Below, one piece after another: positions 3,686 through 46,646 of a stretch of 64,000 nt of DNA (within the stretch, counting starts at the first letter, position 1; each line of letters starts with the position of its first letter). The notes under the pieces are model-generated. The model had not been told where the DNA came from. It was given only the letters and a program-made list of their open reading frames with translations, and did not search any database. This DNA comes from Blastocladiella emersonii ATCC 22665 (Eukaryota > Fungi > Blastocladiomycota), in the NCBI GenBank assembly GCA_025594325.1, contig JANHCV010000008.1:1488001-1552000 (forward strand). Direction: 5' to 3'. Made by a program: the position numbers and the translations under genes.

Positions 3686-5776
3686 TTACTCTGCGAGAGA
3701 CGGAGCAAGGCGCAAAAGCGCGGCCTTCTGCTCGTGTCTTGTCCCAGGGACGTTCGTGAGCTTGGCCATGTCCGTTGCAGTGAGAACCGAGTCAAGGGCA
3801 CCTTCTTCAAGCTCCATGAGCACACTTGGAACGGGCGCGACGCAAAGGTAGAGCTCAACAATAAGACGTGGGTCTTCCTTGAGCCAGACGGAAAGAATCC
3901 ACGGTGTTGTGCAAAGAGAATTGCTTGCCTCGATCTTGGGCGCGCAGCAGGTGTTGGAAAGCTCCCTTGTGCTGGATTTGATTATGAGCTTTTTGGCCAA
4001 ATCGAAGCAATTCACCAGAAGCCGTGGCGCATTGACCTCGTCGGTCTTGGGCAGAAGCTGGCGGAGCGATTCAAACGCCTCCCGCCACACGATGTGGTAG
4101 GAGAGCGGGCAGTTGGAGCATTGGGTCAACTCAGGCGCATCGTCCATTGAGCCATGAATGCCGCTAGAAAAGTGGGCAGCTGTCATGGCACTGAATGGAC
4201 GGGATGCGGCACCCGTCTCGCGCACGATTGAGTGAGCGCCGTCCCTGATTTCGGGATCCGGGTTTGAGAGGACACAGGTGAGCAGCCATGAGATGGCTTG
4301 GGAGGCCACGAACCCCGGCATATCGTTTCAAGTATAAGCTGTCACAAGGGCCTGGCACACGAGGTAGAGAACGTGGAGCGGGCTTGTCATGGGTTCGCAG
4401 TTAAGCATGATGCGTAAATCGTAACCGCGGTCAAGCGCACTGGGCTCCCCAGGAAAGGGGACAAGGCGGTCCAAAAATTGCGTTGAGACAGTCCGCACCG
4501 CGATTTCAATCACGCGCTGCGTCATGCCACTCGCAAGATCATCCCGTCCAAACTGTACGCAACGGAACGCTACAGCTTGTTCAAAGGTGAGCTTGGACCT
4601 CAAGCAGCACGAAGGATATGTGAACAGCCCGTACCCTCCACGAGAATCTCCTCTCATGAATCAGGGCCAACGAGGTCGCGTAACTCAATGAAAGCAGTAT
4701 CCTTGTCACGACTCAAAGCACCGACGACTGCAACCGCCCAGTCAAACACGCGAATGATGCCGTGTTCCCAGAGCGGACCCAACAAATGTAGCTGACTGGA
4801 TGATCGACAAGGATTCGCGTCAGCAGAACAGGGTTACGCCAAGCTAGCGAACTGATCAGCGAACCTCGAGGCCTGAGCACGGCCGTATCCGTCCAGCTGC
4901 GCGAAATGAGCCAGTTAAGCGAGGCAATTTGCTGATCGTCGCCGGCAGGTTCGATTTGTGAAATTGCCAGCTTCGCGATCGGCGCAAGCGAAATGAAGGC
5001 GAGGATGCCGCTCTCGTCAAATGAGTTCCGACGAGTTGCAATCACGTCAAGCGCAGGACGTTGCCAACGCACGATGGCAAGGAAACCCAGGAAGTCAATG
5101 AGGCGAGGCGCGTAAGTCGACTTGGCCGCAGCAAGCTCCAGTTCGTTACCAGCAGTAGACCAAGGTAGTATAACGAGCTCCTTGAAACAAGACAAGTCGT
5201 GCCACTCGATCCAACCGAGTCAAAATGCGAGAACAGCGGGGGAGTGCGTTGTGATGCTGTCAAGGCAAGACTTGAGGAGGGAGAGTTGGCCACATGAGAC
5301 TGCGTAGACTAGCATGAGAATGAGAATTGCGAGAGAATGCCGAAATGGTGAAATTGAAGACCCCAATCCCGCGAGGTTGGTCAGTTCGCGAAGTCCAGCA
5401 TCCGCAGACTTGGCAGCCGAGATGCGTGTAAGTGCCCAAGAAGCAATGATAGTGAGGTGCGTTAAGTGCGAGCCTGGACTGTGGTTACAAATAATAGCGA
5501 GAGCGACGCGGAGGGCATCTCGAAAACCAAGCGGGGCGCTGTCGCGCTTGGTACGGAGCCGATAAGCGCGTGCAAACTGAACAAGATCGCGAAGAGCCCA
5601 AAGGACTTTGGCATGAGATCGGTGGCCACCGAGTGCACGGCGCGGGAAGCAGCGGCAAGCGCGGATCGGGGCTTGGCGAGCTGCAAGACCGCGACGGCGA
5701 GTTCGAGCGGGAGGTCGCCAATGCCCGCCAACATGATGCCGTCTATATTCTGAGTCGATTGCATAGAGTGATTCAT
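3686..5776 (-). pseudogene. F-box-like family copy F1 (frameshift plus premature stop)
   Basis: N-terminus GDLPLELAVAVLQL...AAASR fits an F-box-like pattern and is colinear with F2-F4. Frameshift near 5610; TGA at 5220-5222 where F3 has Trp. Confidence 0.8.
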
Positions 5777-5933
5777 GGTAGCGACGTGCTAGCCGAGGGG
5801 CAAGAGAGAGTGAAGTCGGGACGGACCGCCGCGAGCGAAGCAGGCCGCCCGAAAAGGGCGCCACACCGTCGCGAGCGGCTCTCGCTCTCGCAACGCACCA
5901 GCCACGCAGCACGAAAATTATTACGCTAATCAG

Positions 5934-7703
5934 ATGAACCTGTCTCTTGCCCATATAATCGAGCGCACGCTCATCCACGCAGTCTACTTACACGACGACC
6001 CGAATGACGTCGCTGGCCTGCTTGAATATGCGCGAGTACTGCCCAAGCCGCTGGCCCCTCGCGTCGCCCGCGCCATATTGAAGCGGTCGCCTGCCCTCTC
6101 CATGGACGCTGCGAGTGCGCGTGATGCGGTCAGAGTGCTCGACAAGTGGCGTGATTCGGGCCTGCCCCTCGTCTACTCGCACGCGGCCCTCACGGGTGCA
6201 AACGGCAAGTCGCTTGAGACCATGGAGTGGTGGGGCCGCTCGGGTCTCCACTTCTCACACCCGCAGTGCTTGGGTGGCTCGACCATGGACGTGCTGACCG
6301 AGCTGAATCTTGACGACCTCGCCCCGCTCTTCTTTGTTGATGTACGCTTGCGCTCAACGCTGAGACGTCACTCGTTCTAACCCGACGTGATGTAGATGCA
6401 ACATATAGCAGACGAATTATTTAACCAAATTATCTCGGACATTGCTACCGGGCAAGCGAGCAAGGTTGTTTTCCGTTCCTTGCACTTTTCTCTTGACAAG
6501 GTTTCTGCGCTCAACGAGGCCATGGCGAGCCCCAGCCAGGCCCTTACCTCACTCAAACTCACGGCTTGCTCCATCGACGTCCCGCGCTTCATGCTTCTAC
6601 GCTTTCCCGAATCCCTTATCAATCTCGAGTGGTCGCACGGCTGGGCTTCGCCTAGCATCGCTCACGAGCAGCTCAATTCGTGGGTTTGGCCTCATCACCT
6701 CGAGTCGTTGACTGTCTTCTACCTCAACCCTCTCAATCGCGTCGAAACTTATTTCCGCGCTCGCTCCGCGGTTCCCGAATCCACCTCGCAGTGCAGCAGT
6801 TCGCACGGTCCGTCAATTCAACCGTTCCTGGTCTCGCTTCCCTCAAGCCTCACCAAGTTGGAACTCTTCAGCTGCTCACTTGACGCTGAAGAATTCGCTA
6901 TACTTTTCCCACACCTTCCGCCTGCACTCGTGTATCTTGACATCAGCAACAATCGCCTGTCCGCGACGCAACTCAGCAGCGGTCACCTCCACCTGCCGCC
7001 CACGCTCCGCTTACTAAACCTCTCTGGCAACGAACTTTACCGGGCCACAAACGACGCGCCACTTGGCTGGATCTTTCCGGTCGGCCTCGAGTCGCTTGTC
7101 ATGTCATCGTGCACGCCATACGGATCTGCGGTTCGGCCTGACGCGGTGGGGCGCCAGCTCCCGCCTCTTGAGCTTGCTGCACTTTTCGCCACATCGTTAC
7201 CACCCAACCTCCTCTTGCTCGACCTCTCCATGAATCCCCTTTGCGGGGAACCGCATCTCACCATGCACGAGCGGTACAGGACGCGCTCGAAAGACTTTCA
7301 TCGGGCGAGTGGAGCGTCGCCAGCTGCGATGGCTCTACTCGCTCCTCGACTACCGCCCTCGCTGCAAAAGCTGTATCTCCTGTGTACGTGCGTTGGGGCG
7401 GGCGGGGCGCAACATCTTGCCGATCACATGCCTCCGCGCCTCGAAATCCTCGAACTCTCGCAGACCGACCTTGACGACGACGCGGTCCGTGCTCTTGCCC
7501 CTGCGCTGCCGCAGTCGCTCAAGGAGGTTTCGCTGAACTGGAATCCGTTTACTGAGGCGGTCGCGGGACTGCTTGCTGCACACCTCCCCGACGAGCTTAC
7601 TGCGCTTGACTTGGACCTTGTCGAGCTCAGCGACTCGGCTCTCGCGCTGCTGCGCGGCAAAGTTGCGCGTTCGGATGGGTTTGTTTCGTCACAATTCTTG
7701 TGA
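5934..7703 (+). CDS. F-box-like/ankyrin-like + RNI-type LRR protein L1, join(5934..6341,6396..7703), ~571 aa, apparently intact
   Basis: 54-nt phase-0 intron (gtacgc...ctaac...gtag). N-terminal LAHIIERTL...SMDAASARDAVRVLDKW...LETMEWW; repeated LPxxLxxLxLSxN units. Confidence 0.8.
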
Positions 7704-7981
7704 CGAATGTTCACGCGATTCGGTGAGCTCAGGCCCTCTCGCAGGGTGTTAGCCTAAACGATGTAGACGCAATTTAATTTCTTGATGCTGCTTATTCAAC
7801 GAGGCGATGACCGGCACAGTGTTTGACCTGGCAGCCTGTTTGTGATGTTTGTGCAAGGCGAGAGCGGGAGGGTCCCATGATCGTAGAGCCGACCGAGTGC
7901 TGGTCAACCAAAGTGAGACCCGTAAACCTTCGTATTTATCAAAGGATTGCAACAATCGCGATGAGGTATATATACAGCGCT

Positions 7982-9563
7982 CTACCAACGAACGATGAGA
8001 ATTGGAGGAGTAACCGCAGCTTCAAGCGCTGCAAAACCAGTATCGGTGACGCCAGTACCAATCAAGTTGACGAGCACAAGAGACCGGGGCAAGTTCTTGG
8101 CTAGGACAAGCGCGCCGGCATCTGTGATCCTATTCAATCCCAGATACAAGTCTTGGAGAGTGGTCGGAAGCCGCGGCGCGAGAATCGACACAGCGACATC
8201 CTCGAGGAGTACCGTTGAGATAGAGGGGTTGAAGAGCAGGTGGCATGTGCTGGGCTAATCCCTGAACAGCGGCGTAGTCAAGTTTACAGCTGGCTAGATT
8301 GAGGGAGGTTAATGAGCGCGCGAGGGTCCTGATCAGCTCAAATGATTGTGGGTGGGAGAAAATGTTGCCAACGTGGATGCCAAGCACAACAAGCTGTGGT
8401 GGAAGCATGCGAATGAAAGAAGGGAGTGCGTTCTCGTCCACTGAATCGAACGTGAGCATTAAGGTATAGAGCGAGGAGGCGAGTGCTGTGCCAAACGAAT
8501 TGGCCACATTGACAGTGAGCTTTGGCCCGTGAATGATGAGACGGGCGAGCTGCAGAGGAAGTGCGTAAGGCACCGTTACCAATGGTACCGCGGTGACGGT
8601 TACTGTTGGTGAGTGATGGCGGTCGTCGATCAGTTGCCATACGACGAGTTGCTGGAGCACTGGGGGAGGAGCGACACAAGAGATTCGAAACAAACCCTCG
8701 GTATCGAAGTAAGTAATACCTCAAGTCGCTCGAGCGATTCGGGAAGAACTCGACCAAGTGCAAGAATTGCAGCGCTGTCAAGGGAGCAGTGCTTGATTAG
8801 CAGTACTAAACCTCAGCGACTGAAGGCGTTGAGGCCAATTCATTACTGGCAAGTCGGCGCTCGACGTGGGAAGGCTCCCAAGCCAGAAGCCTGCAAAGTG
8901 GACCGAAGCCAGGGTCAAGGGCAGCTGGAACGCCGAGATTCGAGGAAGGTCGATTGTGCAGCCTTCAATGGTGAAAGTATCAAGTGCTCGTGGACTACCC
9001 GCCATTGCATCATTGAGCGTAGCAATTCCAGCCATCGAAAGGGGCCGTGGCTCGACATTGAGGTTTTCGATTTCGCCGCGCCCGATTCGAGCGCACAAGT
9101 CGTCGATGCCCTCGTCTACAGCAAACGGCCCGTCGTGGTCGAAAGGTTGGACCCCAAGCGCGACGTGTGCGTCTGGATCGGCCTCGCGCTCGTCCAGCCA
9201 CGCCTTGACCTGGTCCAGGTTGAGGACGCGTTTCGTCCGCCACCATTCGAGCACTTGAAGATCAAGTCCGTCAATAGCTGTCCCCAGCGCATCAAGCGAG
9301 TAACTGAGAGGGAGGCCAACCGAGGCCCACCATTCAAGGACGCGGATGTCGCCGCGAGCTGTTGCATTATCAAGCGAGAGATGCGACACGTGTTCCAGAA
9401 GAGTGGAATCGATGCGGCGGGCCAGGGGTCGAGGCACAACACGCGCATATTGAAGGAGGCCATCCACGTCGGCGGGGTCGTGCCCTCGGATCACATAAAC
9501 AAGAATCCGCTCAATGAATTCAGGGACGTGCATCGCCCTGAACATGTTGCATGAAGTTTGCAT
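7982..9563 (-). pseudogene. LRR family copy L2, broken over three reading frames
   Basis: MQTSCN...PEFIERILVYV...LQYARV...RGDIRVLEWW start; LRR tail LPTTLQDLYLGLNRITDAGA; stops and frameshifts between the segments. Confidence 0.75.
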
Positions 9564-9658
9564 TGTGCTGCTCCGGGCCTTGCGCGGGTCGGAGGGAGAG
9601 CCGTTGTGGAGCGAAGCCGCCGGCCGAACGCGCACGACGGTCGGTGTGGCGGCGGCCG

Positions 9659-9681
9659 GTCACATGATACTTCGACGCGTC
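9659..9681 (-). promoter_or_regulatory. Bipartite motif GACGCG-N7-ATCATGTGAC, 96 bp upstream of the L2 ATG
   Basis: Minus strand reads GACGCG TCGAAGT ATCATGTGAC; same spacing as six other copies. Confidence 0.7.
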
Positions 9682-10620: not shown

Positions 10621-10628
10621 CACGTCCC

Positions 10629-10685
10629 ACGCGACGCGTTTCCCATCGCGTCACGCGACGCGTTTCCCATCGCGTCACGCGACGC
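10629..10685. repeat. 2.4 x 24-bp tandem repeat acgcgacgcgtttcccatcgcgtc
   Basis: Perfect units at 10629 and 10653, plus a partial unit at 10677. Confidence 0.95.
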
Positions 10686-12250: not shown

Positions 12251-12499
12251 AAATGGAAGCAGGTGGCCCACCGCTCAAGCACGGCAACGTCACCGCGGGT
12301 CAGGGCCTTGCGCCCGGGCGAGGCTTGGCGCAATGCGGAGGATCGCGCGCTCGTCGGCCGGGATGGCAACGCGGGGCGCGACACGCGCGTACTGGTAGAG
12401 ACCCGCAACATCGTCAGGGTCCGCGTGCAAGTAAATAGCGCGAACTAGAATATCCTCGATGACGACTTAAGGGAGTACAGGGCTGCCGCGGCGGCGCAT
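12250..12499 (-). pseudogene. 5' fragment of an LRR-family gene (N-terminal domain only)
   Basis: Minus strand gives LP*VVIEDILVRAIYLHADPDDVAGLYQYARV...RGDVAVLERW, matching the L1/L3 N-termini (AVYLHDDPNDVAGLLEYARV). This frame is not in the ORF track. Confidence 0.75.
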
Positions 12500-12747: not shown

Positions 12748-15123
12748 ATGAAGCACTCTGTCATGACACACTCCATGCATTGCGATCAGGGACCGCCTGC
12801 AACGCAGGCGCTGTCGTTCGCCGATCTCCCGACCGAGGTGGCCGCCGTCGTCTTGCAGCTCGCTAAGTCTGGCACCGACATCCCTGTGGCATCGCGAGAG
12901 CCTGTAGTTGTCTGCCGCGACTGGTCGGTCCTTTCGTTCTGGACTACGGGCAAGCTTGTCTATCTCAGCAATCTGAACAGGCGTCGAGCAGGAGTAAGAT
13001 ACGGGACGCGGCCGCCTGAGTTGATCTTTGTCAAAGCCGTTTCTCAATTGCAGTACCAAATGTACCAGACATGCGGCAATGATTCTGAATGCTGCGACGA
13101 CGAAGACTTCTGCGAGGAAATTGATGCCCTCTTGCGCGCCATCTTCTCTTGCGCTAGTGCAAGTTCCCGCGTCCACGCCCAACTCGATGGCCGGACCGCC
13201 GATCAGGTCGCCTCGTGCTTGGATGACGCTCTTGGACAACTCTCGGACTTGCCGCAGCGGGCCCTAATCTATCTGAAGCCACTGGTTACAATTCTTCGAA
13301 CTCTCTCGGCGGCAGTCGTGCTCAACAACCGGAGTTTTATCGCACACGCACTCGAGTCAATCGAGCTGCGGTGGCCTCAGCTGCTCGCTACTCGGCTTCC
13401 CTGGCACAAATGGGATGCCCTCGCTCTTTACCGTGCTTTTAGCCATGAAAACGAATTTGAATTTCCTGGAGCAAATATCGCATCATCGTGCGAGCCAACT
13501 CTCACCGACTTCCTTGCTTTTGCCGCAGCCGCATCTTGGAACTCGAGTCCGCTTGAGCTTCTTCTTTCTCCGCGGTTTGGTGCTACGGCGATCCAGGTCT
13601 TCAAGTTTCTCTCGCTTGAACCGGTACTCGAGCTCATGTGCGATACGGTCGCGCAAACTGATGATGAGATCTTTTTTGTGGTAGCGACCATCTTTTCGTG
13701 CGGCTGCACTGTTCCCAATTCGCTTGTCTTCAAGCTCGTGTGCAGCATTGCCGAGGACGACCCGAGGGATCTTGCGAAACTCATGCCGCAGTTTGCCGAC
13801 CAAATCCTTGCGTCGCTAACTCCCCGCCAGCTCCGCCTCGCCAGTCGTTCTATATCCGAGTGGTTCGAGCCCCCGGATTCTCAGGACCAGGATGGGAAGC
13901 GGAATTACGAGCTCGAGATTGAGGCGTGCAACGAGGTGATCCGGGACGCACTTTCGCCACTCATTGTTCACGGCTTATTGCAGTCACGCGACGTTGGTCG
14001 AATCATTTCCTACCTCGTGAGTGACCGGCACTTGCGGAAGGTAGCGGATGGACTTCGATCGATTGTGCCTTCGTCCATGTGGGACGATGCTCTCGTTGCG
14101 GGTACGCTTTGCGCCACTGTTTATTTCCATGAACGCGGTAAAAAGCTAACCCTTACTCATTGTTTTTGAATAGCTTTCAAGTACACGCATGGACCCAATC
14201 GCGACGGGAAGCATGGACTCATCGCTCGATTTGCACGCGAATCCAACAACTTCCATCTCCTCTCTCGACTCAAGCCGTTCTTCGATATTTCAGACGGCTT
14301 TCACGTCGAGGACTTCCTTCTCACCTTCTACAGCAAGTGCGACAACTCGGACGAGGAACTGCTCGAACTCCTTTCGATTGTCGTACCGCATCTGCCGAGG
14401 ATGCCGCCTCGTAAGTTTTCTTGGGATTTTGAGATGAGCACCTTGACTACGCGGCTCGCAGTGGCCGTGCTTTCTCGTCCGCTGCTTCGAGACCGCGCGC
14501 TTACGATTGTGCACGAAGCGGCCGCCGCTTGCCACCTGGTCATGGTCATGGTTTTCGTCCGTCTCAAGTATCCTGAGATTTTGCCGGAACAGCCTTCGTC
14601 ATTCCACGAAAGTCGTGCCTGCCTCACCTCCGCTTACGAGACGGCGTGGCGCGAGACATTCATGCTGCTTATTCCCGCTCCATCCACCATGGCGAACGAG
14701 ATCGGATTAGCGCAGCTACTCTCGAACGTTATGCGATCGTCCAGAGACATTAATCTCAGCAGAAGCTGGAAGCGATACGAATGCCTGAATTGCTGGTCGC
14801 GCGACCCAACCCGCGGGCTGACCGAGTTTGTGCTCACTGCGTTGCTGCAGCACGACGCGGCGGTGATCGTCGCCCTGTTCGAGTCGCTCAATCCTTTCTC
14901 CACCAAGTGCTCGAGCTTCTTGCCTGCCGGTTCGCTTGACGGCGCAATGACGGTAAAACTCATTCGAACCCTCGCTTCCACTCGAGCGGCCAAACCCAAT
15001 CACTTGGTCGAACTGCACCGCCTCGCTCCTAGCAAGTATGCGGAGGCGGGCTTGCTTGAGCCGTTGGATGAATGGAAACGCCATCAGCCGCAGTGGCAAG
15101 TCTATGTATACTGCAGCAATTAA
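12748..15123 (+). CDS. F-box-like family copy F2, join(12748..14101,14174..15123), ~767 aa, apparently intact
   Basis: ADLPTEVAAVVLQL F-box-like motif. A 72-nt intron (gtacgc...gctaac...tag) removes the apparent stop at 14169. C-terminus HRLAPS matches F1/F3. Confidence 0.8.
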
Positions 15124-15465: not shown

Positions 15466-15536
15466 GTCAAGTTTGACTGAGATCAGCGCCGCGCTCGGTC
15501 CGCCGGCGCTTCCTCTCCACGCACATGCTACCAACC

Positions 15537-19026: not shown

Positions 19027-19974
19027 ACCATGCTTTGTTTTGATTGACTCCAACCTGTTTACCGTGCTCATTTTGGAGCGGCGAGAGAAAGCGGGTTTGC
19101 TCGACTGCCAATGAGAAAACACGAGAGCACACACTTGGCACAGGTGAACCAGGTAGTGGTGCTCAGGACTTAGTCGAAGTCAACCGTTACCTTGTCGTGG
19201 CGTCTGATTTGAACGGGCAGAGATGCCCGCCCGCCATTTATGGCGCAGAGAGGCGACTTTTCCAGAGAGCGTGCGAAGGACACGATTTCACCAATACCCA
19301 AAAATGACGACTGGCAGCCGCTTTTTTTTGCCATCAGGACCAACACGGCCGGGCCTACGTTCAGCGCGACACGCGACGGCTCGAGCGGCGGGACGCTGGG
19401 AGGCGCGGCGTGAGACGCGACGATCAAACACGCCATGCCACGTGACCGAGTTCGCAAGCGAATGCGGTCGATCATCCGTGCGCCGAGTCGCACTCGCTGC
19501 TCTCTCCTAACCGCCTGCACTACCATGAAGCAAAAGAAAGGAAAGTCGTCCAAGACTAAGCGCAAAGCGGCCCGCAGTCCCTCTGTCGGCGCTGCCCGCG
19601 ACGACCCGTCGCCCCCGCCCGCTTCGGAGTCGCCGATGCCATCCGCTGCCGCCTCGGTTCCGCTCGCACCGCCGACGCAGACCAGCGCGACACTTGCACT
19701 CGACAACGAGACGGACCCGTACCTTCCCTACGGCAAGTCGTTCTCGCGCGACCTGTTCCTGTACCACAACCCGCGTGAGAGCAAACACCTCGGCGCGCTC
19801 GTCTTCCAGTGCGGCGACCTGCGCGACGTTGCGCACACGGTCGGCGAGGCCAGGCGCAAGTACGGCACTGCCAACCTCGATTTCGTGCTGAGCGACACCC
19901 ACTTTGAGGTGCTCGCGCGCAACCTGCTCGTCCTCCGTGCCGTGGCGCAGACCAAGATAACCGATCGTGCCGCC

Positions 19975-20862
19975 GTCTCGGCGCTTACTCGTCATGTCGG
20001 CCAGCTCACCTACTCGCTGTACCTCGACCCAACGACGCGCGCGTTCTGGGCCGAGCAGATGCGCGCGTGTCTCGCGGCCAACTGGACCACACCCGACGCC
20101 CAGGTCCGCGTCCTCGACGATGCGACGCGCCGCGGCGTGCGCGCGTGTTGGGAGTCGTGGCTCGCCGTTAGCTGGTCGCCCGCTAAGTTTGACCAGACCC
20201 GGACCGCGTTCTACAACACGGCGGTTCGCCCCACCGAGGTCCCGAGCCACATGTCGCACACCAAAGTCGCGGTCCACCGGACGATGCAGCGCCTGCGCTT
20301 CGAGAACATGACCAAGATGGAAAAGTTTGACGAGCCCGATAGCCTCGAGCGCGACGTGACCGCGCTCGCAACCACGGGTCACTTCTTCCTCGATTACGGC
20401 GGTATCGACAAACCCAAGGCGCCTTGTCTTGGCGCTCACTCGCCATGTCGGCCAGCTTTCCTACTCCAACTACCTCGGCCCGCTGACACGCGCTTTCTGG
20501 GCCGACCACATGCGCGCCTGCCTCGCGACCGACTGGCCCGCGCCTGACGCCCAGGTCTGCGTTCTCGACGACGCGGCGTACGCGCGTGCTGGGGGTCGTG
20601 GCTAGCCGTGAGCTGGTCGCCCGCCAAGTTTGACCAGGCCCGAACTGCTTTCTACGACACGGCGCGCTCCCGCAAAGTTGAGGATACCACGTCGCACACC
20701 GAGGTCGCAGCCCGCAACACGATGCAGCGCCTTCGCTCCGAGAACATGACCAAGCTGAAGAGGTTTGGTGCGCCCATTAACCTCGAGCTCGAACTGCGCT
20801 CAATCGCGACCGAGGGTAACTTCTTCCTCGATTGCAGCGGTGCCAGCAACCCTACTGCGCTC
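19975..20862 (+). repeat. Intragenic tandem duplication, period ~451 bp, roughly 80% identical by eye
   Basis: gtctcggcgcttactcgtcatgtcggccagc at 19975 versus gtcttggcgctcactcgccatgtcggccagc at 20426; colinear for about 430 bp. Confidence 0.9.
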
Positions 20863-23910: not shown

Positions 23911-26081
23911 TTAGGGCAACGCGAGAGAAGGTGCAAGGCGTACGAGCGCGACGCTATGCGATGCTTTTGAACCCTTTGCAGTCAGGATCAAAGCTGCGTC
24001 GTGGACGGTGAGGACCGATTCAAGCGCGCCGCTCGGAAGAAAGTGCGTCAAAGAATGTGGAATGGGAGCAAAGCAGTAGTAGAGCTCGACAATGAGCCGC
24101 GGAGCTGCGGCGAGAAGGCGGGAAAGAATCCACTGGGTTGTGAGCTCACGTCGAGCTGTCAAACCGCAGCAAGTGGTCTGCAGCTCCGATGCGATTGATT
24201 CGTCCACCATGTGCTGGATCGGTTCAAGAAACCGCACAAACAAGCGAGGGGCGACCAGGCTACTACTTGCGAATGCAAGCACCAACGGAAGGAGTAGATC
24301 AAACGCGTCCCGCCAATTCATGTGAAATGTAGGCGAACATCTGCGGCAATCATTGTACCGAGGCGCGTGTGCGAGGACGCCTTGGCTGCTACTCGAGAAG
24401 TGCGCTGCCAACATTGCGCTCAAAAGTTGTGGTGCAGCGCCAGTCCCGCGGACGATGCCAAGAGCGGCATCCCTTGTCCCAGAGCCCTTGAGCAGTTTAG
24501 TCGTGAGCCACGAAACGGCATGCACTGGGTTAATGAGGAGCCCGTTGTTGTGAGAAGCGGCGGCGACCAGGGTTGGGCAAATGATGGAGAAGACATTGAG
24601 CAAATCGGTCGCCGGCTCACAATCGATGAGGGCAGGGATCGAGACGTGCAACTCGAACTCGTTGAAATCGTGAAGCAGGTCCGCAAAACGGCTCAGCAAG
24701 TTTGTCGAGCTGGTTGTCGTTGCAAGCTGGATGACCCGTTGAGGAAGGCCAATCACAGGGTCCCTGCGAACAACAAGCACATTGCTAAACGCTGGACATT
24801 GGAGGCTGGTCAGCACGTGTAAAGGAGATCACAGTCTGAGCGGGACGTACTCTTAACAAGAATCTCATTCCATGCGGTCGCGCCGACGATCCCACGGACG
24901 TCGCCAAACGTCGCGTCCTTGTCTTTTCCAAGTGTCTGCGCGACCGCTATCGCACATTCGGACTCGGAAAGAATGCCGTGCTCCCACAGCGGGCCAAGTT
25001 GGCCAAAATCGTATGAGCGATATTTGAACTGCGAAACAAGTGCGTTGCGAGCTGAGGCAATCCGCCCCGGCGACATAGTGGCCACGATCTCGTTAGGGTA
25101 CTTGGCAAGCAGCTGCACAAACAGCGGAGGGTTTCGATTGCACATTGTGCCGACAAGCGGACTTTCGTCGCCATTTACAGATACGTCAGTCCACCCGTTT
25201 GTGATGAGCCATTCGAGCGGAACAAGGGACACGCGCTCGTTGTCTAGTATATCGAAACGATGGGCGAAGTTGTACACGAGCGGCGCAAGCGAGAGTATGG
25301 AAGCTACGCCAGACGCGTCCACGGCGAAGCGATGATCCGTGAGAAGCTCGAGCGAAGATGGCTGCCACCGCATGACGGCGATGAGCCCCAGAAATTCGAC
25401 GAGACGCGGAGCGCGCAAAAGCTCGGCGATACTGAGTTCAAGCTCCTCGAAAGTAGCACCGTCAAGTTGCTCAACAAGTCGGTCGAACCAGCACAATGTG
25501 CGCCACTGGGACCAGCGAAGCCAAGTATCGAGAAGCGCGTGATGCTTGAGGAAGCCAGTGAGACACTTGGAAAGCAGGGCAACATGTCCCACGGCAGTCG
25601 CGTAAGCTGCAACGAGGATAATGGTCGCGAGAGGCTCACGGAATGGGTAATGAACACGGCGTGTGCTTGCAGCGTTTAGGTAATCTTGTACGTGAGTGGA
25701 CGAGCGGCACCCGTATGGCCGCCTGATGTGCGCGAGAGCCCAGTCGGCAATGATTTCGATGTGCGCGTCGTGAGAGTTCAAGTCATCGATGCAGAGTCCA
25801 GTCACTGCCAGGGAGAAGGCATCGCGAGTGCTCAGTGGAGTTGGGTCGCACTGGTACGCTATTTGATAGAAGCGCGCGAACGCAACGAGCCGGTCAAACG
25901 CCCAAAAGGCTTTGGTGTGATAGTCACAGGCGGTTGAGAGGAGGAAGCGGGAGGCGGCCGCAGCCGCGCCTCGGGGCGTCGATAACAGCAAGACGGCGAC
26001 AGCGAGCTCGTGCGGAAGGTCGACAAGTGTCGCCACAGCGCTGTCGCCCGGTTCATGAGTCGATTGCATAGAGTGCTCCAT
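23911..26081 (-). CDS. F-box-like family copy F3, complement join(23911..24791,24851..26081), ~703 aa, apparently intact
   Basis: VDLPHELAVAVLLL motif. A 59-nt intron (gtacgt...gctgac...ccag), at a position equivalent to the F2 intron, joins the two listed ORFs in frame. Confidence 0.8.
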
Positions 26082-26206
26082 GGAAGTGATGTGTTTACTG
26101 TAGGGGCAGGGGGAGGAGACATCGCGGGCGCCCTGTCGCCTCGGCCAAATATCGGGTCACGCGACCGCCGCCCGAAATTTGTTTCGTGACACGTCGCGAC
26201 ACATAC

Positions 26207-26536
26207 AACATCCTCGAGCCATCGGATGTAGATGCACTCGTGGCGTGACTACCACTGGCTGAGTCGCTTCGAGTGCTTAAAATCGCATCCTGCTTGTTTG
26301 ACACGGCGATCATGTCAGCCATCGTCCGCGTTCTGCCAACCTCAATCGAGATGTTGGATCTCAGCGAAAACCCCGTAGGCGATGAGGTTGTTGGCGTGAT
26401 CCAGGAGGCTCGACTTCCGTCGCTTACGAAAGTTGTCCTCGTCAAAACGAACGTTACGAGTGCGGCGAAGTGTAGACTTGCACAGTTTCTCAGGTCGAAT
26501 GCGGCCAACCAGGAAGACACTTCGACTGTTTTTTGA
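26207..26536 (+). pseudogene. LRR gene fragment (C-terminal repeats only)
   Basis: SLRVLKIASC...LPTSIEMLDLSENPVGD...LTKVVLVKTNVT; in-frame TGA near 26246; no N-terminal domain. Confidence 0.6.
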
Positions 26537-34251: not shown

Positions 34252-37175
34252 TCCTTGGCTCATTAATACATAGCGATTTTGACACGTCATTCACTACTCG
34301 CCTTTCCACGCGGACGGAACTTGACGTCCAGCATATGTTCAAGCCAGCCTAGTCGCCTACTGCTGAGACAGAGTGTGCAAAGCACACATCCCTAGTCCCA
34401 GCATCTGCTTCTGCGTGATAATCTCGGCCGAACCTGCGCCGTGACTGCCACCTCGCTTGACCCTTCCTTCGATTGGAGCACGGCTTGCGTTGTTCCTGGA
34501 AATGTGCCTGTCTCACCTCACTAATGTCTTTGAGATATCCGCAGGCATCCGCTGACCCGGTTTTCGAGTAGACGCAGCAATCAGGCAGTCGTGTCTCGCT
34601 CCACCGCCCACTCTTCCTGTCCCTTCGACCCATGCCGCTTCATCTCATGCAGGAGTCTCGACTGGAATCACTTCCGCCGTGCACACTGTTCAGCATGGCT
34701 TTGCTCCCGCCACGCCCATGTTCCACCAGCTTCCTGTCGCGCATGGTCACTACTACCCCGGACAAGCGCACTATGTTGCTTCCTTTTACGGCTATCCGTA
34801 CCACGGGTATCCGTACGCAGCTGCCGCTGCCCCGGCCGCGTATCCGACTACAGGCTATCCACCGATGCACACGCATGCGCTCAACGGGTTCTTGCCGTCG
34901 TCGCCCTCACCGTGGCCCGCACCGATTGCACCATGGGTAAAACATGAGTCTGGCCATAGGTATTGTGCTTCGCTGACACGAACGGTGATGTTTAGCCCGC
35001 TCACACGGCATATTCTCCCAGTCAGGGCGCGTTCTACTCCCTGAAGCAATATCCGTACCATCCGCTGCAGCTCGCACATTTGAACCCTGCTTTGTTTGCC
35101 GCTGACGGCGTGACCAACGGGTTTCCAACCTCAATTTCACCGCGGTTACCGAATTTCTTCTCTGGTCCTACAACGCTGCTGCACGGGTCCCCGCAGACCG
35201 TTGCTCCAAGCTTAACACTCTCTGTTCCGCCTGCTCCCAACGCGACAACTCAACAAATTTCTGACTTGCTACTGCCACTGCGGTCGGCCGTTGTCGTGCC
35301 TCCTCTGTTGCCATCGGCGCCAAGCGCTTCGCCTCCGGCACCTTTGCCCGCTACGCCAAGCACGACGGTACCGCTTGCGTCCGCATCTGACCCTCCAGCG
35401 GAGGCTCCGTCGACCTTCCTCCCGCGGATCCGCCTTAACGTTCCGTCGCCCGACCATCAGCTGGCGGATGACGTCGCGCTTGCACCACCAACACGCCGAC
35501 CACAGACGTTCTGCCCGCTTCAACCCGACCTGCGAAACGGATTCAGCTGCAGGCTCCCTCCCGGTTCCAGTTCTTGCCGAGCGGCGAGACTCGCCTGCTG
35601 TTGACGCCTACTGGCGGGCAGTCGCAGAGAAACTTGTTAACTGATCATCAAACCTTTCAATCGGAGGTGGCTGAACGCAGCAGGAAGTGGGCGACCGTGG
35701 CACCGGCTGCGGACTCCATGGCAGTCAAGGCCGCCCGCCTACTTCACTTGTGTCAAAAGAAGCACAATGCCGCGCCTCGCTCGGCCGTCTTCACTCTCAC
35801 CATTTTGCGCGCTCTCGACCGCATCTTTGATGAGCCTGTTGCGCGTCGCCAGTTTTCCGAGCTGCCGTGCGGCATTTCCGACACGCGCGACCTCGATCTC
35901 GTGCCACTCCTCAGCGAGACTCGGTCGATTGACCAGTACAAGAGAATTTGGGAGACGGTTGGCGTGGCAACGGGCTCAGAGCTTGCCCATAGCCACAAAT
36001 TCGAGTGGACGCTGACTCGGACGATTCTCGTGAGTATCCACCAACTGGTCGTCGTTCTCGCGTGTGCTGCAGACCATCTCGCTGCGGTGTTTGGAGTTGC
36101 ATCTGTTTAGGTCCCTCTTGGCACGGCCAAACTGGAAATCATGCTCGCCATTTATCGCCTGCGGCATGAAGGATGGGCGCGCGTTCTCTCGTGGTTCGCG
36201 GCGACTATCTCGTCCGTTGGCGCTGACTTGGCTTTGAAGGCAGCGCGAGCGCCAGCCGAAGCGACCAACGGCGCTCGGCGCCGCGGTACCTGCCGCGCTG
36301 CTGTCAACTTGCGCAGCGCACTCGATGCGCACCCGCTTACCATGTTTCTGTCGTTCCTCAACCGCCCCCGCATTGCCAAACAGTATCCCGAGTGCGTGAC
36401 CGTTGGCCGTGTCGTGGGTAGCGTGCTTTCGGATTCAAGCCAAGCCAGCTTCATCATCGCGTTTGCTGATCCCGCTTTTGCTCACCGCGTTCTTGCGACG
36501 ACCCGCGAGGTTCTGCAGCTACCCGAGCTCGCGCCCTGTATTCGCGTCGTTCTCGAACTCGCCTGCGCCAATGTCAAGCTCTCGTACACGCTTGATATCA
36601 AGCCCGAGCACGTCGGACTTGTTCATTTGGACTCGCGTGGCCATGGTGGAGAAACAGGCCCTACTGAGCTCATCATGCGAGTCCGGAGTGGTAGTGGCGG
36701 CCGAATCAAGATTTCACCCGGCCCAATCGAGTTGCGCAGATGGGACGAGTTCAAGACGCGCATGCGGCCGCTCTCGACGTGATCGCGCGCGGCAGTGACA
36801 CCGCCGCGCGCGCCAACGAGGCGGCGGGCGAGGAGATCATGGCGGACGCCTTGTGAGCGGCGGAAGCACTCCGTCAACAATGCGCGTCTTCGAGTTGAAC
36901 TACGAATAACGCGATGCATGTATAAATTATCAGCGTTGGTTCCTTCTCTGGAACGGTCGAGCGAGACGTCAAGGGCGACGGCAAGCACGAGTGAGGTGAC
37001 TTTTTGACAGAGGATGCTTGCATTCGTCGAGAGCAGAGCCATGGACGGGGCGACAGGCAGGGTCGGCTGCGGACACGACGCTCATCTTGACCCGCCATCA
37101 CGTGGCTGTGGCTTGCTTGACCCGCGCGCCTGAACCGAGCTCGCTTCTCCAGCCCCGTGAATGCAATCCATGTCC

Positions 37176-40100: not shown

Positions 40101-41655
40101 TTCCTGCCGCTTCTCCGACGCAACCCGATCATCAAGCAGTACCCGGCGTGTGCCGCCGCCGGCCACGTCTCGGCGAACATCTTCGCGCACTCGAGTTGTG
40201 CCGCTCACATGATTGCATGGGCCGATCCCGTGGTTGCAACGCGCGCCATGACGGCATCACATCAGATTGCCCAAACGCCTGGCATCGTGCCGGCTATCCG
40301 AGCCGTTCTCAAGGTTGCGTGCGCGAATATCGTATCGTCAGCAGTACTCCACCTCGGCGTCCGTCAACGCGCCGTCAGGTGGCACCACGTCGGGCAGCAC
40401 CACGTCCGGCAGCGTCACAACGCCGTCGGGACCCGCGGCGTCGGCCGTCGTCCAGGAGCTCGACATCAACCTGCAGGAGTGGGACGACGTCGGCAGCGAG
40501 TCCGACATGACTGTGGTTCCCGCGTCGTCGTCCGCCGTGACCAAGAACAAGAACATCACCAAGATCGTCGTCGACTCGGAGGCCGATGAGGAGGTCGACG
40601 CCGACGAGGAGGAGAGCGAGTGCGAGTTGGGCCCGTCGTCGTCGTCAAGCCGCGCGCGCAAGATGGCCACCAAGGCCAAGGGCCGCGACAAGAACAAGAC
40701 GGTCAAGACCCCGCCGGCCTCGCCCACCAAGCGTACCCACACGTCGGCCGTCAAGGGCAAGTCCGGCGCTGCCGTCCCTGCCGCCCAAGACGACGACGAG
40801 GCCGACGACGACGACTCGGCGACCCCGCCGGCCTCGCCGACCAAGCGCGCGCGTCGCGGTCCCGCCAAGGGCAAGGGCAAGGACCGCTCGGCCTGATCCT
40901 GATCCTGTTCCTTCCTTCGTTTCTTTCGAAAGTACTTCCGCTGTCTGATATATTCCAAACTCTTTTTCTTCCAACTGGTTACTACTCGAATTTGTGAGGT
41001 GCTCGTCGACTGGCGAGCTCAAAGAGTTTACCCCTGAACTCTGAGAACGCGTTTCAAAGACGCGTTGCGTGACGCGTTGCGTCGGCGCTCGCGTTTGTGT
41101 TCTCACAACGATGACCCTGAACAAGGTCATTGCCGACTTCGGCGACCCCAAGCTCCCGCATCGTTTTCCTGCCCGGTACCCGTACATGGTCCTCTCTCGA
41201 GCGCGCAGGACCGAGGACATCCTCATCATCAGGTTCAACAGTCGGGTTCTCGTGCAGAAGGCATTACAGCACGTGGCGAAGGACATGGAGCGACTGTCCC
41301 TGCTGAGCAGGATTGAGAATTGATAAACTACTTCACTTTCACCAACTGAAACAGTCTCAAGAAGCCAAGTAAAACTACAGCTGAGACCCAAGTGTGTGCG
41401 CAGCACACACACCTAGTGTTCTTGAAGGCCGAATCGCCCGGGCAGAAGGACGGGACCGGCGTCGCGGGTGTGATGAAACGCGTTCACGACGCCAACTGTC
41501 ATATCCGTTTGGCGCCCAGAACCATCGAGCTGTGCGGTTGGGACGATTTCAAGACGCGCCACGCAGCCGCATTTGAGTTCATTGCGAGCGGCGGTCCGCA
41601 GTCGACGCCTCCGGGAGGCGAGGAGACGAACGAGGACGCATCCGTTGTTGATTAG
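37176..41655 (+). pseudogene. Large tandem-array gene, copy alpha, split by Helitron H2
   Basis: Same exon 1 and intron as beta; in-frame TGA at 38189-38191 between the Ulp1-like part and the linker; intron 38876-38936 joins the linker in frame to ORF 39081; C-terminal homology (IELCGWDDFK) resumes at 41417. Confidence 0.7.
40330..41416 (+). mobile_element. Short non-autonomous Helitron H2
   Basis: 8-bp hairpin gtgtgtgc-gca-gcacacac (41392-41410), then CTAG (41413-41416)|T. Helicase motif VI remnant YPYMVLSRARR at about 41178-41210. The 5' A|TC at 40329/40330 restores the frame but omits ~13 codons seen in paralogs, so the 5' end is uncertain. Confidence 0.65.
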
Positions 41656-41957
41656 CGCAGCGCTACTGAGACGCGGTCTAGTCCAGAGTAGGATCGCTTT
41701 GTGCATGTTTTATGAGCGTCCAATATAAATATTCGTAATGGAACAAGCGTGAGAAAAACTGAACAAGACGCGTAGGGAAATCATGTCAATGTAATTTGAG
41801 CTGACGGCTCCCAATCAGTCAATTGTTTCCCGGCTCGAGTTCTGGGTTGCAAGTGTAACGATAACGCCGTCGGCTCAACGCCAATTTAGCATATCTTTCT
41901 TTTATTGACTTTTATGTTTGAGCTGCTCAATCAGCTGGGCGGACATATGGTGTACGA

Positions 41958-41980
41958 GACGCGACGAACTATCATGTGAC
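41958..41980 (+). promoter_or_regulatory. Bipartite motif GACGCG-N7-ATCATGTGAC with no intact gene downstream
   Basis: GACGCG ACGAACT ATCATGTGAC; the ATGs at 42052 and 42066 open only tiny frames. Confidence 0.55.
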
Positions 41981-42964
41981 GCCCACGTGAGGAAGGCAAG
42001 CACGTGAACAGCGTCGTTTCGCCGCGCTCGTCACCCCTCTCCTTTGCGACCATGTAAACGGCAGCATGGCAATTGATCAGAATTTAAATGCATTTTGAGA
42101 TATAGGTCGGAGATTCAACGTTATAAAAGCTAAACACTCTGTCACATCCATCCCCAGAGGATGGTCTCTGTCTCAAACGCCAACTTCATTTACCGTGAGC
42201 CGCTTCCTACATACTCAGAGTCTACATTTGACGTGGTGCGCGACAGGACGAACGCAGGGATTCAACGGTAATGCGTCCAGCGAGACAAACCTCTGCTCAT
42301 AAACACAACAGTGAGGTAATCGAAGATCTAGCGCAACAGGGAAAAGGGGTGAATGGTGATAGGAATCGAGCTCTGCGGGGCGTGAAAACAGGCGGCATAA
42401 GTGGAAGGCAAATGAGCCACAAACAGCGAGCAGTGTGGCACGCAACGGGGCAAAGGTGAAGGCCAAGTATAAAAGACGATTGACCGTTACTTGCAATCGA
42501 TTAGTGCGCTCACAAAGGAAAGCAAAGAGCAAGCAATCGCAGGAAAAGGAAAGAAAAAAGAGGCGTCTCGCGCACGGAGAAGACTCAGCTGGAGCGTAGC
42601 TCCAGCTGCAATTTCTGAAATCGTCCCAAAGACGGCGTGGTTTGGCAAATGAGAGGATGATAAAGAAGCCGAGCGGTTGGCGCATGCGATGGGACGGCGA
42701 TAAGCGTGTGTGTGTGTAGTTGCGGCGCGGCGGTGGTGATGCGGGGGCGGGGCTGGGGCCGGGTGTGAAAACGTGAGAAGCCGGCGCGTCTGGGTAATAG
42801 GAGGAGTAAAATATAGAGCCAAGCCGGGGAAGCTGCACATAAACTACTCTAGCAGGACGTGCGGCTTGTGGGAGCGTGCGTGTGGTGCGCCAGCCGTGCC
42901 CGCGCCGCGGCGCTTTCCAACTCATTCCCGATTTCGACTTTGGTGGCTCCCACAGGTGCATTTG

Positions 42965-43876
42965 AGTCGCGTCATCAACTCGGTTCGAGACATGTTCGCC
43001 GCCAGAGGCTGGGAGTTTGTGGCTTAGAATCTGCTCGCTAACTGAGGTAGACGCGATGCCCATTGGCGGATCCAAGATCCACGCCGTGTGCGGTATCGGT
43101 ACGACCGTTTCAGCAACCAAGTCGGTAATCAACGCAATCAAGAAGAATATGGAGTCTTTACGCCATGTCTACTTCATCCTCGTTGACAAAAGCTCCATGT
43201 TGGCACCGAACTCCTTGCCGCGGCGCATCGTGTTTGGAAGCGCTGTATCCGAGCCGCAACCATTGTCCATTTGGTGGCCTGCAAGTCCTCGCGGGGTTCG
43301 GCTACTTATTCCAGTTAGAGCCTGTCATGGCCCGCTCGCTCACGGTTCCATCCGAGCAGCTGGTCAATCGTGAACCAGAGCGCGAGGTGGATGCAGCTCA
43401 TGATGGAGACTTGGTGCAGGTCGACGGCGAGCCTCAGCAGCAGAAGAAGAAGCGCGGGTCGAAGCTTAAGGAGTGGCCAGCGGTCAGCAAAACTCGAACC
43501 AACGCCAACATTGGTCGCGATCAGTGGCTCGCCTTCGACTCGGTCTTTTCCCTTGTCCAGCAGATACAGCAGTCGACCGACGCGGAGTTCCTCAACGTGC
43601 TCCAGGACCTGCGCAACTGCAACGCCTCGCAGCGCGTGATCGAATTTCTTTGCTCGCGCCGAGCAAACGTTGTGTTGGGCCAGCATCCAGAGTGCATCGA
43701 CGATTGGAGCGACCAGGTCCTCAGCACGGCGCAAAACTCGGTGCGCGACGCGTGGAACTCGATGGCCGCCGCGACACACGCGCGTCGCCTCAGACTCAAA
43801 CCTGACAAGTTTTTCGACCTGGAATGCGTCTAGTCGCCTACTGCTGATACAGAGTGTGCAACGCACACACCCCCAG
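42965..43876 (+). mobile_element. Helitron H3: degraded PIF1 helicase plus 3' terminus (5' end not located)
   Basis: LSRVINSVRDMF, PIGGSKIHAVCGI, FILVDKSSML and PFGGLQVL..GYLFQLEPV resemble PIF1 motifs I-III. The last ~48 bp are near-identical to the H1 end, with hairpin 43854-43868 and CCAG|T. Confidence 0.75.
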
Positions 43877-44726
43877 TCGAGATAAAGATGGGATCAACCG
43901 AGAGGAATGCGAGAACACGCGGTTCATCCAAGGCAAACTGTGGCTGCGAGAGCACTTTGAGCGCGGGGAGTTGGAACGTAGCGAACGCAAGAAAGCCCGG
44001 GTAGTCGACGAACTGGGCGGGCTCGGACCACTCTGGGGCATCAAAGCCGTTCTCGTCCCATTTGTTGGCAGTGGGGTTCTCGGCGAGCAGGTTGAACAAG
44101 CAGAGCGCGTGCCACTCTCGCCATTGCAACCGGGTCACGAGTAGCGCAGGGCAGTGCTCAAGGAGGATAGCGGGGCAGCTGTTGAGGACAGCGACCCGGC
44201 CCGTGGAAACAGCGCACACGATGACGACAATGAAGGCTGGGAGCGGTTGCTCAAATGGCGAAAGATCGCGCTGACCCGTGACGCTCAAGATCAAGACTTA
44301 GAGTTTGACTTCCAACGCCGTAACGCCTTGCGCAGAGCGGGATTTCTGGTACGCGTAGTCGTCAAGACGCAGTCGTGTGATGTAAATGAGAAGCTCGCTG
44401 TGGTGCTGACGCATCCATCGGCATAGTACATACAACGCAAAGCCGACCGTATTCTTTGGAAGGCTGCCGAGTTGAGGCCAGCACAACAAGGATCGGCGGC
44501 ACTGCTCGCGGTGCGCCAGTGCCACGTGCGCAAGGCGGGAATGGAACCATATTTCACTGACCTCCCAGTCTGCCGACAAGAAGTGGAGCGAGCGTGATGC
44601 GGCTGCGAGTGTGGATCTCGGGTCCGCAATTTCCAGGACCAAGTCTAGCTATTTGCACGGCAGGTCGCCAAAGCCGCGCACATGATTCATTGACGCGTGT
44701 TGAGCGTATTGCATCAAGTGATTCAT
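43877..44726 (-). pseudogene. F-box-like family copy F4, truncated at the H3 3' end
   Basis: MNHLMQ...GDLPCK*LDLVLEIADPRSTLAAASR; in-frame TAG; homology to F1/F3 stops exactly at 43877. Confidence 0.8.
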
Positions 44727-44860
44727 GGCAGTGAGAATGCAGCGAACTCACAGGAGAGAGATTGATCAGAACGTGACGCGTCGACGCGTGCTCAAATTCG
44801 CGTGACGCGCCGCGGACAGTTCGCACTCCCCCCGCCGCCCACCAGCGATCACGGAAACAA

Positions 44861-46646
44861 ATGAAGCTGGCCCTCGCCGAGATCATCGAGAAAGTGCTCG
44901 TCCGCGCCGTGCACCTGCACGACGACCCCAACGACGTCGCGGGCCTGAGCGAGTATGCGCGCGTCCTGCCCGCGGACTTGATCCCGGGCGTCGTTCGAGC
45001 CATCTTGAAGCGCTCTCCTAAGCTGTCCATGGACACAGCGAGCACGCGCGGCGCCGTGAAGGTGCTCGACAAGTGGCGCGACTCGGGGCTTCCACTCGTC
45101 TGTCTACTCGCACGTGGCGCTCTCGGGCGCGAACGGCAAGTCGCTTGAGGCCATGGAGTGGTGGGGCCGCTCGGGTCTCCCGATCACGCACCCGCAGTGC
45201 CCAGGCGGTTCGACTATGGATGTGCTGAAGCGCCTCAACCTCGGCCAACTCGCCGCGCTCTTCCCCAGCTGCGTACGCTGACTCGTCACACTGATCGAGT
45301 CACGTCCACTCACACTCTCTCGACTGTCTAGCCTCGCCCTCCCGTGGAGGCGCCTTTCGTCTCCATCAACGACGCGGTGGCTGGCATCTCATCCGGCCAG
45401 CTGACCAAGGTCGCCTTCCGCAACGAGTACTTTTCGCTTGATGCCGTCGCGGCACTGAACGAGGCCATGGCGAGCCCGAACCAGGCGCTCCGCTCGCTCA
45501 AGCTTGAGCGCTGCGCCATCGACATGCCGCGCCTCATGCTGCTCCGCTTGCCCGAGTCGCTCACCAAGATTGAGTGGTCGCAGGGCTGGAGCGCGCCGCA
45601 TGCCGATCCCGGCCAACCCAAGTCGTGGTCGTGGCCGCCGCACCTCGAGTCGCTTTCCGTCACCTGGTCCACGCCGCGCGGGCACGCTTTGCTCCTCCTT
45701 TCGTCGCTTCCCTCGACCCTCACCTCGCTTTCGCTGTGCAACATCTCGCTCGAGCGCGACGCGTACCCGCACCTGGCTTCGCTCTCGCCCAGCATCACCA
45801 GTCTCGCCATGTCCAACTGCTTGCTCACGGACGACGCGTTCGCGGTGCTCTTCCCGCACCTGCCGCCCGGCCTGGTCTCGCTCAACATCAGCAACGACCA
45901 GCTCACCGCCACGCAGCTCGGCGCGCTTTACCACCATTTCCCGCCGACGCTTCGCTCGCTCGACTTGTCCGCGAACCATTTGGACCGCAAGACCAGCGAC
46001 GCGCCACTCGGCTGGTCGTTCCCCGCTGGGCTCGAGCGACTCGAGATGTCGTCTTGCACGCCATACGCGCAGGACCTTCCCGAACGCACCGGCACGCTTA
46101 GCGTTCCGCAACTCGAGCTCGCTGCGCTCATCGCGGCGTCGCTCCCGCCCAACCTCGTCTCGCTCGATCTCAGCGTCACGCCCCTGTGCGGCCAGCCCCA
46201 CTTTGACGTGTCCGAGGTGATCACGATGCTGCAGCTCCATTTCCACGAGGGCGGGGCGTCCTCCAATTACATGGCGCTTATCGCTTTGCGTCTGGCGCCC
46301 ACGCTGCGCGAGCTCAAAAAAAAACCTCAAGTGGACGTGCATTGGCGCCGCGGGCGCACAGCATCTCGCCGAGCACATGCCGCCGCAGCTCGAGTCGCTC
46401 GACTTGTCCCAGACGAATCTCGACGACGCCGCGATCCAGGCCCTCGCCCCCGCGCTGCCTCAGACGCTCAAAAAGGTGTGCGTGAACTGGAACCCGTTCA
46501 CCGACGTCGGCGCGTTGGTGCTCGCCGCATATCTTCCGAACGAGCTCGAGGAGCTTCGCGTGGATATCGTCGAGCTCAACGCCGAGTCGATTGAGCTGCT
46601 TCGCACCAAGGTCGCTGACGGCGGCACCTTCACGTCTGGCTTTTGA
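44861..46646 (+). pseudogene. LRR family copy L3 (closest to L1), two frameshifts
   Basis: 4-bp gtct duplication near 45100; intron about 45273-45330; frameshift in an A9 run at about 46316-46324. Confidence 0.8.

Follow-up and report, generated by a model that had tools for sequence, protein, structure and literature searches.

In a 64,000-nucleotide stretch of the genome of Blastocladiella emersonii ATCC 22665, of the Blastocladiomycota (C20:1488001-1552000, hereafter the window; assembly of 32.65 Mb in 21 contigs), members of two large gene families lie head to head at short distance. This arrangement recurs elsewhere in the genome and probably descends from one ancestral divergent pair, amplified about ten-fold by segmental duplication, eroded by birth-and-death decay and held together by its spacing of about 150 bp. 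The first family, F, has an N-terminal motif reminiscent of an F-box and a predicted helical solenoid, and the second, L, has leucine-rich repeats (LRRs) preceded by ankyrin-like repeats. An earlier note, made from this DNA alone, had reported that all four F genes of the window are paired head to head with an LRR-family gene. When the features of the window were located by tblastn and by iterated hidden Markov model (HMM) scans of six-frame translations the adjacency proved real: each of the four F genes has L-family sequence upstream, in divergent orientation and 134-285 bp away, with two of the adjacencies being full gene pairs (F1/L1 and F4/L3) and two involving short L scraps (beside F2 and F3).

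F/L pairing is non-random and extends beyond the window. When 79 F starts were matched against 148 L N-terminal starts, eight divergent neighbours were found at 135-495 bp and one at 1.5 kb, to which the window adds the two pairs that retain L fragments only. Five to seven pairs lie outside the window, on C5 and C20. From the 26 other F-L co-occurrences within 20 kb, which are evenly spread over 2-20 kb, about 0.13 pairs would be expected in the short divergent slot, a comparison in which the eight pairs do not count as independent events, the paired copies being related by duplication. In the census behind these numbers the F profile gave 75-89 significant places among 185-212 candidates, while for L the N-terminal domain had 527 candidates, all 150 of those scored being significant, and the LRR part gave 217 of 563; the pairing count listed 148 of the roughly 527 L N-terminal candidates. 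In all, 200 kb and twelve 3.2-kb loci were read fully and the rest was assessed by matching coordinates, 47 F loci being represented by coordinates only. The F family comprises at least 80-200 copies and the L family about 500.

Most members of both families are unpaired, an outcome that the earlier note had named beforehand as one that would refute the two-gene module it proposed: unpaired genes make up at least 85% of F and at least 97% of L, and the paired share is at most 11 of the 79 located F genes and about 11 of some 500 L genes. In twenty 10-kb loci centred on F genes, an L gene stands head to head with two out of some 27 F genes, at L010 (C5:709-712 kb, gap of 476 bp; three-digit numbers denote loci) and at L015 (gap of 1.5 kb), and the others have no F or L neighbour, an F gene in tandem or head to head, or an L gene in tandem orientation. 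The closest relatives of L1 and L3 include paired genes (L1, L3, the copy of L3, C20:1678985, C5:507077 and C5:533607) as well as unpaired ones (C5:687855 and C5:648804), the more distant L028-L032 are unpaired, and upstream of 11 unpaired L genes, L2, L4 and L5 among them, no F remnant was found even at permissive thresholds. The unpaired L copies of the window had been described as a separate subfamily. This holds for L4 and L5, which form a separate starred clade in the L tree, but not for L2, which groups with the paired L genes.

That the pair has propagated as a unit, as the earlier note had proposed, is borne out by the F tree, by the spacers and by one recent copy. In the F tree one starred clade of ten (SH-aLRT 98) takes in seven of the nine F genes that have partners: F1, F3, F4 and its copy, C20:1678k, C5:506k and C5:710k. 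Broken F genes were entered into this tree piece by piece, each piece being aligned on its own and then combined by profile column, and the breaks were left as gaps. The L partners of the paired F genes are L1-like, in an L tree whose deep nodes lack resolution. The spacers of the core pairs are mutually homologous (z up to 8.4), and since the spacer upstream of F3 shares this homology the scrap beside F3 is what remains of a partner that was once complete. DNA homology between the F1/L1 unit and that at C20:1678k takes in the 5' end of F, the spacer and the 5' exon of L, and a 99.8% identical copy of the whole F4/L3 unit, inverted and 3.2 kb long, lies 70 kb away at C20:1602740-1605979. With homologous spacers, F partners that are largely monophyletic and a young copy, the pairs have the features of a segmental-duplication family derived from one ancestral pair. 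They are also old, present beyond the window and, as the earlier note had seen, strongly diverged, F proteins sharing about 30-40% identity. For F2 we considered whether its juxtaposition with an L scrap is ancestral in the F2 clade, and rejected this: upstream of the ATG the closest F2 paralogues match F2 over no more than about 70 bp, and they carry no L scrap, so the juxtaposition is secondary or one-off.

No pair of the window has both partners intact, as had been correctly observed; elsewhere in the genome a single pair, that at C5:709-712 kb, has both frames open (F of 487 aa, L of 548 aa), making it one of 11. About seven pairs have one partner open and three have none. In F1/L1, C20:1678k and C5:563k it is the F gene that has died, beside an open L; the pairs of F2, F3, C5:507k and C5:533k show the reverse, an open F beside a dead or fragmentary L; and in F4/L3 (two copies) and C5:285k both genes are dead. 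This pattern of intactness is as independent decay predicts. The evidence points to linkage not being maintained, because decay strikes either partner and because close sister copies of paired L genes occur without F. Specifically L031, which copies the C5:507k L gene at 90% identity, sets in 28 bp downstream of the start of the coding region and lacks both spacer and F, L025 has only 130 bp of upstream sequence in common with its paired sister L026, and C5:565497, a duplicate of the L gene of the intact pair, is preceded by another L gene and by no F.

Table 1. Features of the window (positions count from its first letter).
Feature	Position	Strand	Description
F1	4660-5776	-	F-family pseudogene in four pieces with shifted frames (HMM 1-86, 54-185, 188-345, 355-402)
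F1/L1 spacer	5777-5933		157 bp; homologous to the C20:1678k and C5:507k pair spacers (z 8.4 and 3.9)
L1	5934-7703	+	intact L-family gene
L1 exon 1	5934-6344	+	137 codons; helical cap and two ankyrin-like repeats
L1 intron	6345-6395	+	51 nt; GTACGC..CTAAC..TAG
L1 exon 2	6396-7703	+	435 codons; RNI-type LRR
L2	8012-9635	-	L-family gene without upstream F; tail to tail with L1; LRR part in fragments
L N-terminal-domain fragment beside F2	12317-12499	-	HMM 8-56, E 6e-18
F2	12748-14169	+	intact 473-aa F-family open reading frame
DUF4470 protein gene	19435-20547	+	ordinary conserved gene
F3	24810-26081	-	intact 423-aa F-family open reading frame; sister to F1 in the F tree
F3 upstream spacer	26082-26254		homology with the spacers of the C5:507k pair (z 6.8) and of F4/L3 (z 3.6)
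L C-terminal LRR fragment beside F3	26255-26503	+	HMM 319-401, E 1e-18, 83 aa
Helitron-like 3' end	43830-43878	+	hairpin GTGTGC..GCACAC followed by C(T/C)AG; 49 nt
F4	43884-44726	-	F-family pseudogene, HMM 29-269 only; stop at about codon 18
F4/L3 spacer	44727-44860		134 bp
L3	44861-46637	+	L1-like L gene; frameshift near 45100
L3 intron	about 45266-45331	+	same position as the L1 intron
URI1-type prefoldin/DUF3835 protein gene	48701-51322	-	ordinary conserved gene, inside a block of 70% G+C
L4	57181-58840	+	L gene of a separate clade; no upstream F remnant
L5	62716-63988	+	L4-clade L gene; no upstream F remnant; extends toward the window edge

The L fragment next to F2 covers about 50 aa, is interrupted by an in-frame stop after codon 10 and diverges from F2 across a gap of 248-285 bp. 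The one next to F3 was missed by plain tblastn and recovered by the HMM scan; it lies 174 bp from F3, has an in-frame stop directly upstream, and the remainder of its L gene is gone. The window has a G+C content of about 60% and short spliceosomal introns of fungal type (GTACGC...CTAAC...TAG). As a separate observation, young inverted segmental duplications were seen on both contigs, at C5:1125-1135 kb versus 1141-1151 kb (L006/L007, 99.5% identical over 5 kb) and at C20:1531-1535 kb versus 1603-1606 kb (L021/L022, 99.8% over 3.2 kb), and many matches in searches of the genome against itself came as mirrored pairs of identical score, a picture that suggests large palindromic duplications in this genome.

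F2 and F3 are 24% identical over their full length and belong to one family, whose N-terminal signature reads MxHSMQ...DLPxELAxAVxQLAxPRxAxPAASRxL...VLxxW (F1 begins MNHSMQ); in the consensus P28, V35, Q37 and L38 are nearly invariant and W65 is invariant. The label F-box-like, which the earlier note had given to these genes, finds no support in Pfam. F2, F3 and the F1 pieces had no Pfam match, a Pfam scan of 21 aligned F proteins returned no F-box even at expectation values (E) up to 10 and no consistent family, and of the 47 matches to PF12937 genome-wide none falls inside an F or L gene. Judged by sequence the resemblance is thus one of motif, with membership of the F-box family not demonstrated: when the F N-terminal profile was compared with the sequences of the PDB the second-best match was the F-box of FBXW7 (5ibk_B), with LPxELA in register and a sub-threshold E of 0.69, and the F profile gave sub-threshold matches only in that collection. 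The AlphaFold (AF2) model of F, built on 21 paralogues, is an all-alpha solenoid (predicted local distance difference test, pLDDT, 80; predicted template-modelling score, pTM, 0.79) with low confidence over the region of the LPxEL motif (pLDDT about 50). With this model Foldseek returned only generic designed, PPR and ARM solenoids at a template-modelling score (TM) of about 0.2, a structural aligner gave many ankyrin proteins at Z 5.5-7.7, which is below its stated noise level for helical repeats, and the neighbours of F in the Atlas were ankyrin clusters, weak at 0.89.

An exhaustive HMMER search, run with the F profile only, recovered almost exclusively 'hypothetical proteins' of B. emersonii ATCC 22665 (KAI91xxxxx, best E 3.5e-39), and beyond B. 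emersonii it gave repeat-level matches only, for example in Catenaria anguillulae; F2 found nothing in a word-indexed search of a collection of 5.8 billion proteins. Two observations on single F loci may be added here. At L012 (C5:788-791 kb) an F3-like F gene (L012:1258-2385, minus strand) stands head to head, across a gap of 222 bp, with a gene (L012:2608-3882, plus strand) of a very divergent F-like subfamily, whose branch length is 2.2 and to which L010:38-799 and L013:1170-2591 also belong. The F family thus has a divergent pairing of its own, different in kind from the F/L pairs. At C5:287-291 kb (L015:5001-5705 and 8188-8784) an F gene is interrupted between profile positions 202 and 226 by some 2.5 kb of inserted sequence.

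L proteins carry LRRs of the ribonuclease-inhibitor (RNI) type. Against the Pfam model PF13516 (LRR_6, cut-off 23.4 bits) L1 exon 2 scored 27.5 and the L gene of L010 scored 38.9, the two L1 exons having been queried separately and not as a joined spliced protein, and in the PDB the best match of L was a GALA protein (1.5e-9), followed by NLRP5 and ribonuclease-inhibitor LRRs. The N-terminal domain of about 118 aa was modelled with a pLDDT of 87. In this model residues 1-57 form a three-helix cap, and the best superposition of residues 58-118 on two ankyrin repeats has Z 6.6, with a root-mean-square deviation of 2.3 Å over 61 residues; the structure matches listed for residues 54/58-118 are mostly ankyrin repeats, with no match to the Pfam Ank model. 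Residues 1-57 brought up miscellaneous helical pieces in the fold search, with no F-box chain among the matches listed, the L N-terminus has no Pfam F-box match and no PF12937 match of the genome at any L locus, and the domain found nothing in the word-indexed search. A shared N-terminal domain of F and L was also considered and was dropped, since hhalign shows no relationship when either the F N-terminus or the whole of F is compared with the L N-terminus. None of the F or L proteins scanned has a nucleoside triphosphatase (NTPase), toxin or enzymatic domain. Introns are present in some L genes and absent from others: L1 and L3 have a short one at the boundary of the N-terminal domain and the LRRs, and the C5:710k L gene (L010:5477-7123) is a single open reading frame of 548 aa. 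Outside L genes, partial matches confined to the ankyrin-like half of the N-terminal domain (profile 45-106) lie at L006:1932-2720, L007:7264-8121, L009:7811-8599 and L019:2044-2919, and the ankyrin-like repeat with 'EWW..SGL' is therefore shared with further gene families of this genome.

The ratio of nonsynonymous to synonymous divergence (dN/dS) is 0.24-0.45 in F and 0.19-0.24 in L, with synonymous divergence (dS) of about 1-2 between old copies in both. Such values indicate that F and L are real coding genes, constrained but fast-evolving. The deposited proteome seems to lack the high-copy genes resembling F2 and F3, and the L genes, perhaps as a result of repeat masking; we base this on the lack of any counterpart of F2, F3 or the L N-terminal domain among the 5.8 billion proteins, and on the best match of the F profile reaching no further than the E value given above.

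Under the reading that we favour, the ancestral F would have combined the MxHSMQ...DLPxELAxAVxQL...W motif with an all-alpha solenoid of about 400 aa, and the ancestral L a three-helix cap with two ankyrin-like repeats and RNI-type LRRs, the two being separated by some 135-235 bp. Segmental duplication in those parts of C5 and C20 that are rich in duplications and transposons would have produced the copies. At a distance of about 150 bp the duplication of one promoter-proximal end would nearly always take both genes along, and so short a spacer would offer a small target, with few rearrangements falling inside it, such that linkage would persist for mechanical, neutral reasons with the promoters presumably inside the spacer. 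If the pairs spread from one ancestral unit by segmental duplication, no selection on linkage is needed. Four points weigh against this account. The arrangement has survived the deep divergence of the F proteins noted above, and the spacer is still alignable although dS exceeds 1. This alignability could stem from a bidirectional promoter common to both genes and kept under constraint, but the promoter of L by itself would equally be an explanation; that promoter together with the small target of the spacer would account for both the persistence and the alignability without selection on linkage. Two paired F genes do not belong to the main clade: F2 falls among unpaired genes, in a clade of 12, and the F of C5:533k stands on a long branch elsewhere. 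A single origin therefore requires replacement of F or an error in the tree, and a strictly single origin of all pairs is not proven. The census, finally, is incomplete, and pairs with L genes unlike L1 may be undercounted.

The same persistence speaks for a functional two-gene module, in which F and L would be co-transcribed from a common bidirectional promoter and act together, for example as an LRR recognition protein and an F-box-like adaptor, with selection keeping them linked in the manner of paired plant NLRs (NLR, nucleotide-binding LRR receptor) or of toxin-antidote pairs. The arrangement has been kept in at least seven old lineages at a constant short spacing, its spacer is conserved beyond dS of 1, the pair at C5:709-712 kb is open in both frames, both families are under purifying selection, and L1-like sequence adjoins F genes of three F clades. 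We nevertheless consider such a module unlikely, given that at least one partner is dead in 10 of 11 pairs, that young sister L copies occur without F, that the great majority of both families is unpaired, that neither protein has an NTPase, toxin or enzymatic domain and the F-box is not confirmed, and that no relatives outside the species were found for a comparison of synteny. Its more specific form is more doubtful still: F and L would be a co-regulated two-protein recognition module in a zoosporic fungus, an LRR-ankyrin sensor and a divergent F-box-like solenoid adaptor under one bidirectional promoter, diversifying by duplication as an NLR-free analogue of paired immune receptors or of an incompatibility system. 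A function of the pair in self/non-self recognition, defence or drive, as the earlier note had it, is pure inference. The pair might also be cargo of a Helitron or other large transposon that had captured both genes, in favour of which is the Helitron-like 3' end of the window, only 6 bp away from where F4 is truncated and with a 92% identical copy at 34349-34397. This 49-nt end, however, does not occur at other pair loci or beside F1, F2 or F3 and among the pairs stands only beside F4 and its 99.8% copy, and Helitrons therefore broke the F4 copy rather than carrying the pairs; its orientation places the Helitron body outside the pair and reads as an insertion that truncated F4. We thus reject the Helitron as carrier and hold capture by any mobile element to be very improbable. 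Chance adjacency of two abundant families in the same clusters might be entertained since both are large and co-occur on C5 and C20, since F and L are also found in tandem orientation (L003, L008 and L016) and since F genes also stand head to head with F-like genes (L012), but it is refuted by the excess of pairs in the 0.4-kb divergent slot and by the homology of the spacers, which leaves it with next to no credibility.

If duplication and decay of one ancestral pair is the right account its value is descriptive: two very large, fast-evolving families come to light that are largely missing from the protein collections searched. The repertoire of B. emersonii would comprise about 500 LRR-ankyrin genes alongside 100-200 genes for solenoid proteins whose motif resembles an F-box, clustered in transposon-rich regions, which bears on the annotation of such genomes and on how early-diverging fungi build large recognition repertoires. 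Both families likely serve in protein-protein recognition, possibly as substrate receptors of ubiquitin ligases. If the module were real it would represent a new two-component recognition system without an NTPase. To our knowledge innate immunity and incompatibility are essentially unknown in the lineage of Blastocladiella, and our literature search found no paper describing the F family, the L family or the F/L pair.

Among the closest known systems are the lineage-specific birth-and-death expansions of F-box genes and other substrate receptors in nematodes and plants (for example the F-box genes of C. elegans, bioRxiv 10.1101/2020.07.09.194670 / PMC8120010, and of Caenorhabditis, PMC8665587), which likewise are species-specific and consist of hundreds of clustered, fast-evolving paralogues with many pseudogenes. 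As in these expansions, a short N-terminal helical motif is followed by a C-terminal recognition domain of repeats; unlike them, F and L reach no Pfam F-box model, and their repeats are a novel alpha-solenoid and an ankyrin-plus-RNI-LRR array. For the nematode and plant expansions no multiplication of a fixed divergent pair has been described. With F-box/LRR proteins of the FBXL type (Skp2, FBXL and the bacterial GALA effectors) L shares RNI-type LRR_6 repeats and a short helical N-terminal domain ahead of them, but its N-terminus matches no F-box in Pfam or in the fold search, and two ankyrin-like repeats stand between cap and LRRs. The head-to-head NLR pairs of plants (RGA4/RGA5, RRS1/RPS4) are similar in that divergent genes, one of them an LRR partner, share a short promoter region and have been duplicated and diverged; F and L differ from these in having no NB-ARC, NACHT or signalling domain, in the loss of one partner from most copies and in most members being unpaired. 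A toxin-antidote element would be expected to keep both partners intact together; in the F/L pairs both are open in only one of 11. A further parallel is with the segmentally duplicated divergent pairs with bidirectional promoters of compact eukaryotic genomes, with which the F/L pairs have in common a short constant distance, co-duplication and a homologous spacer, and among which about ten copies within two lineage-specific families are unusually many.

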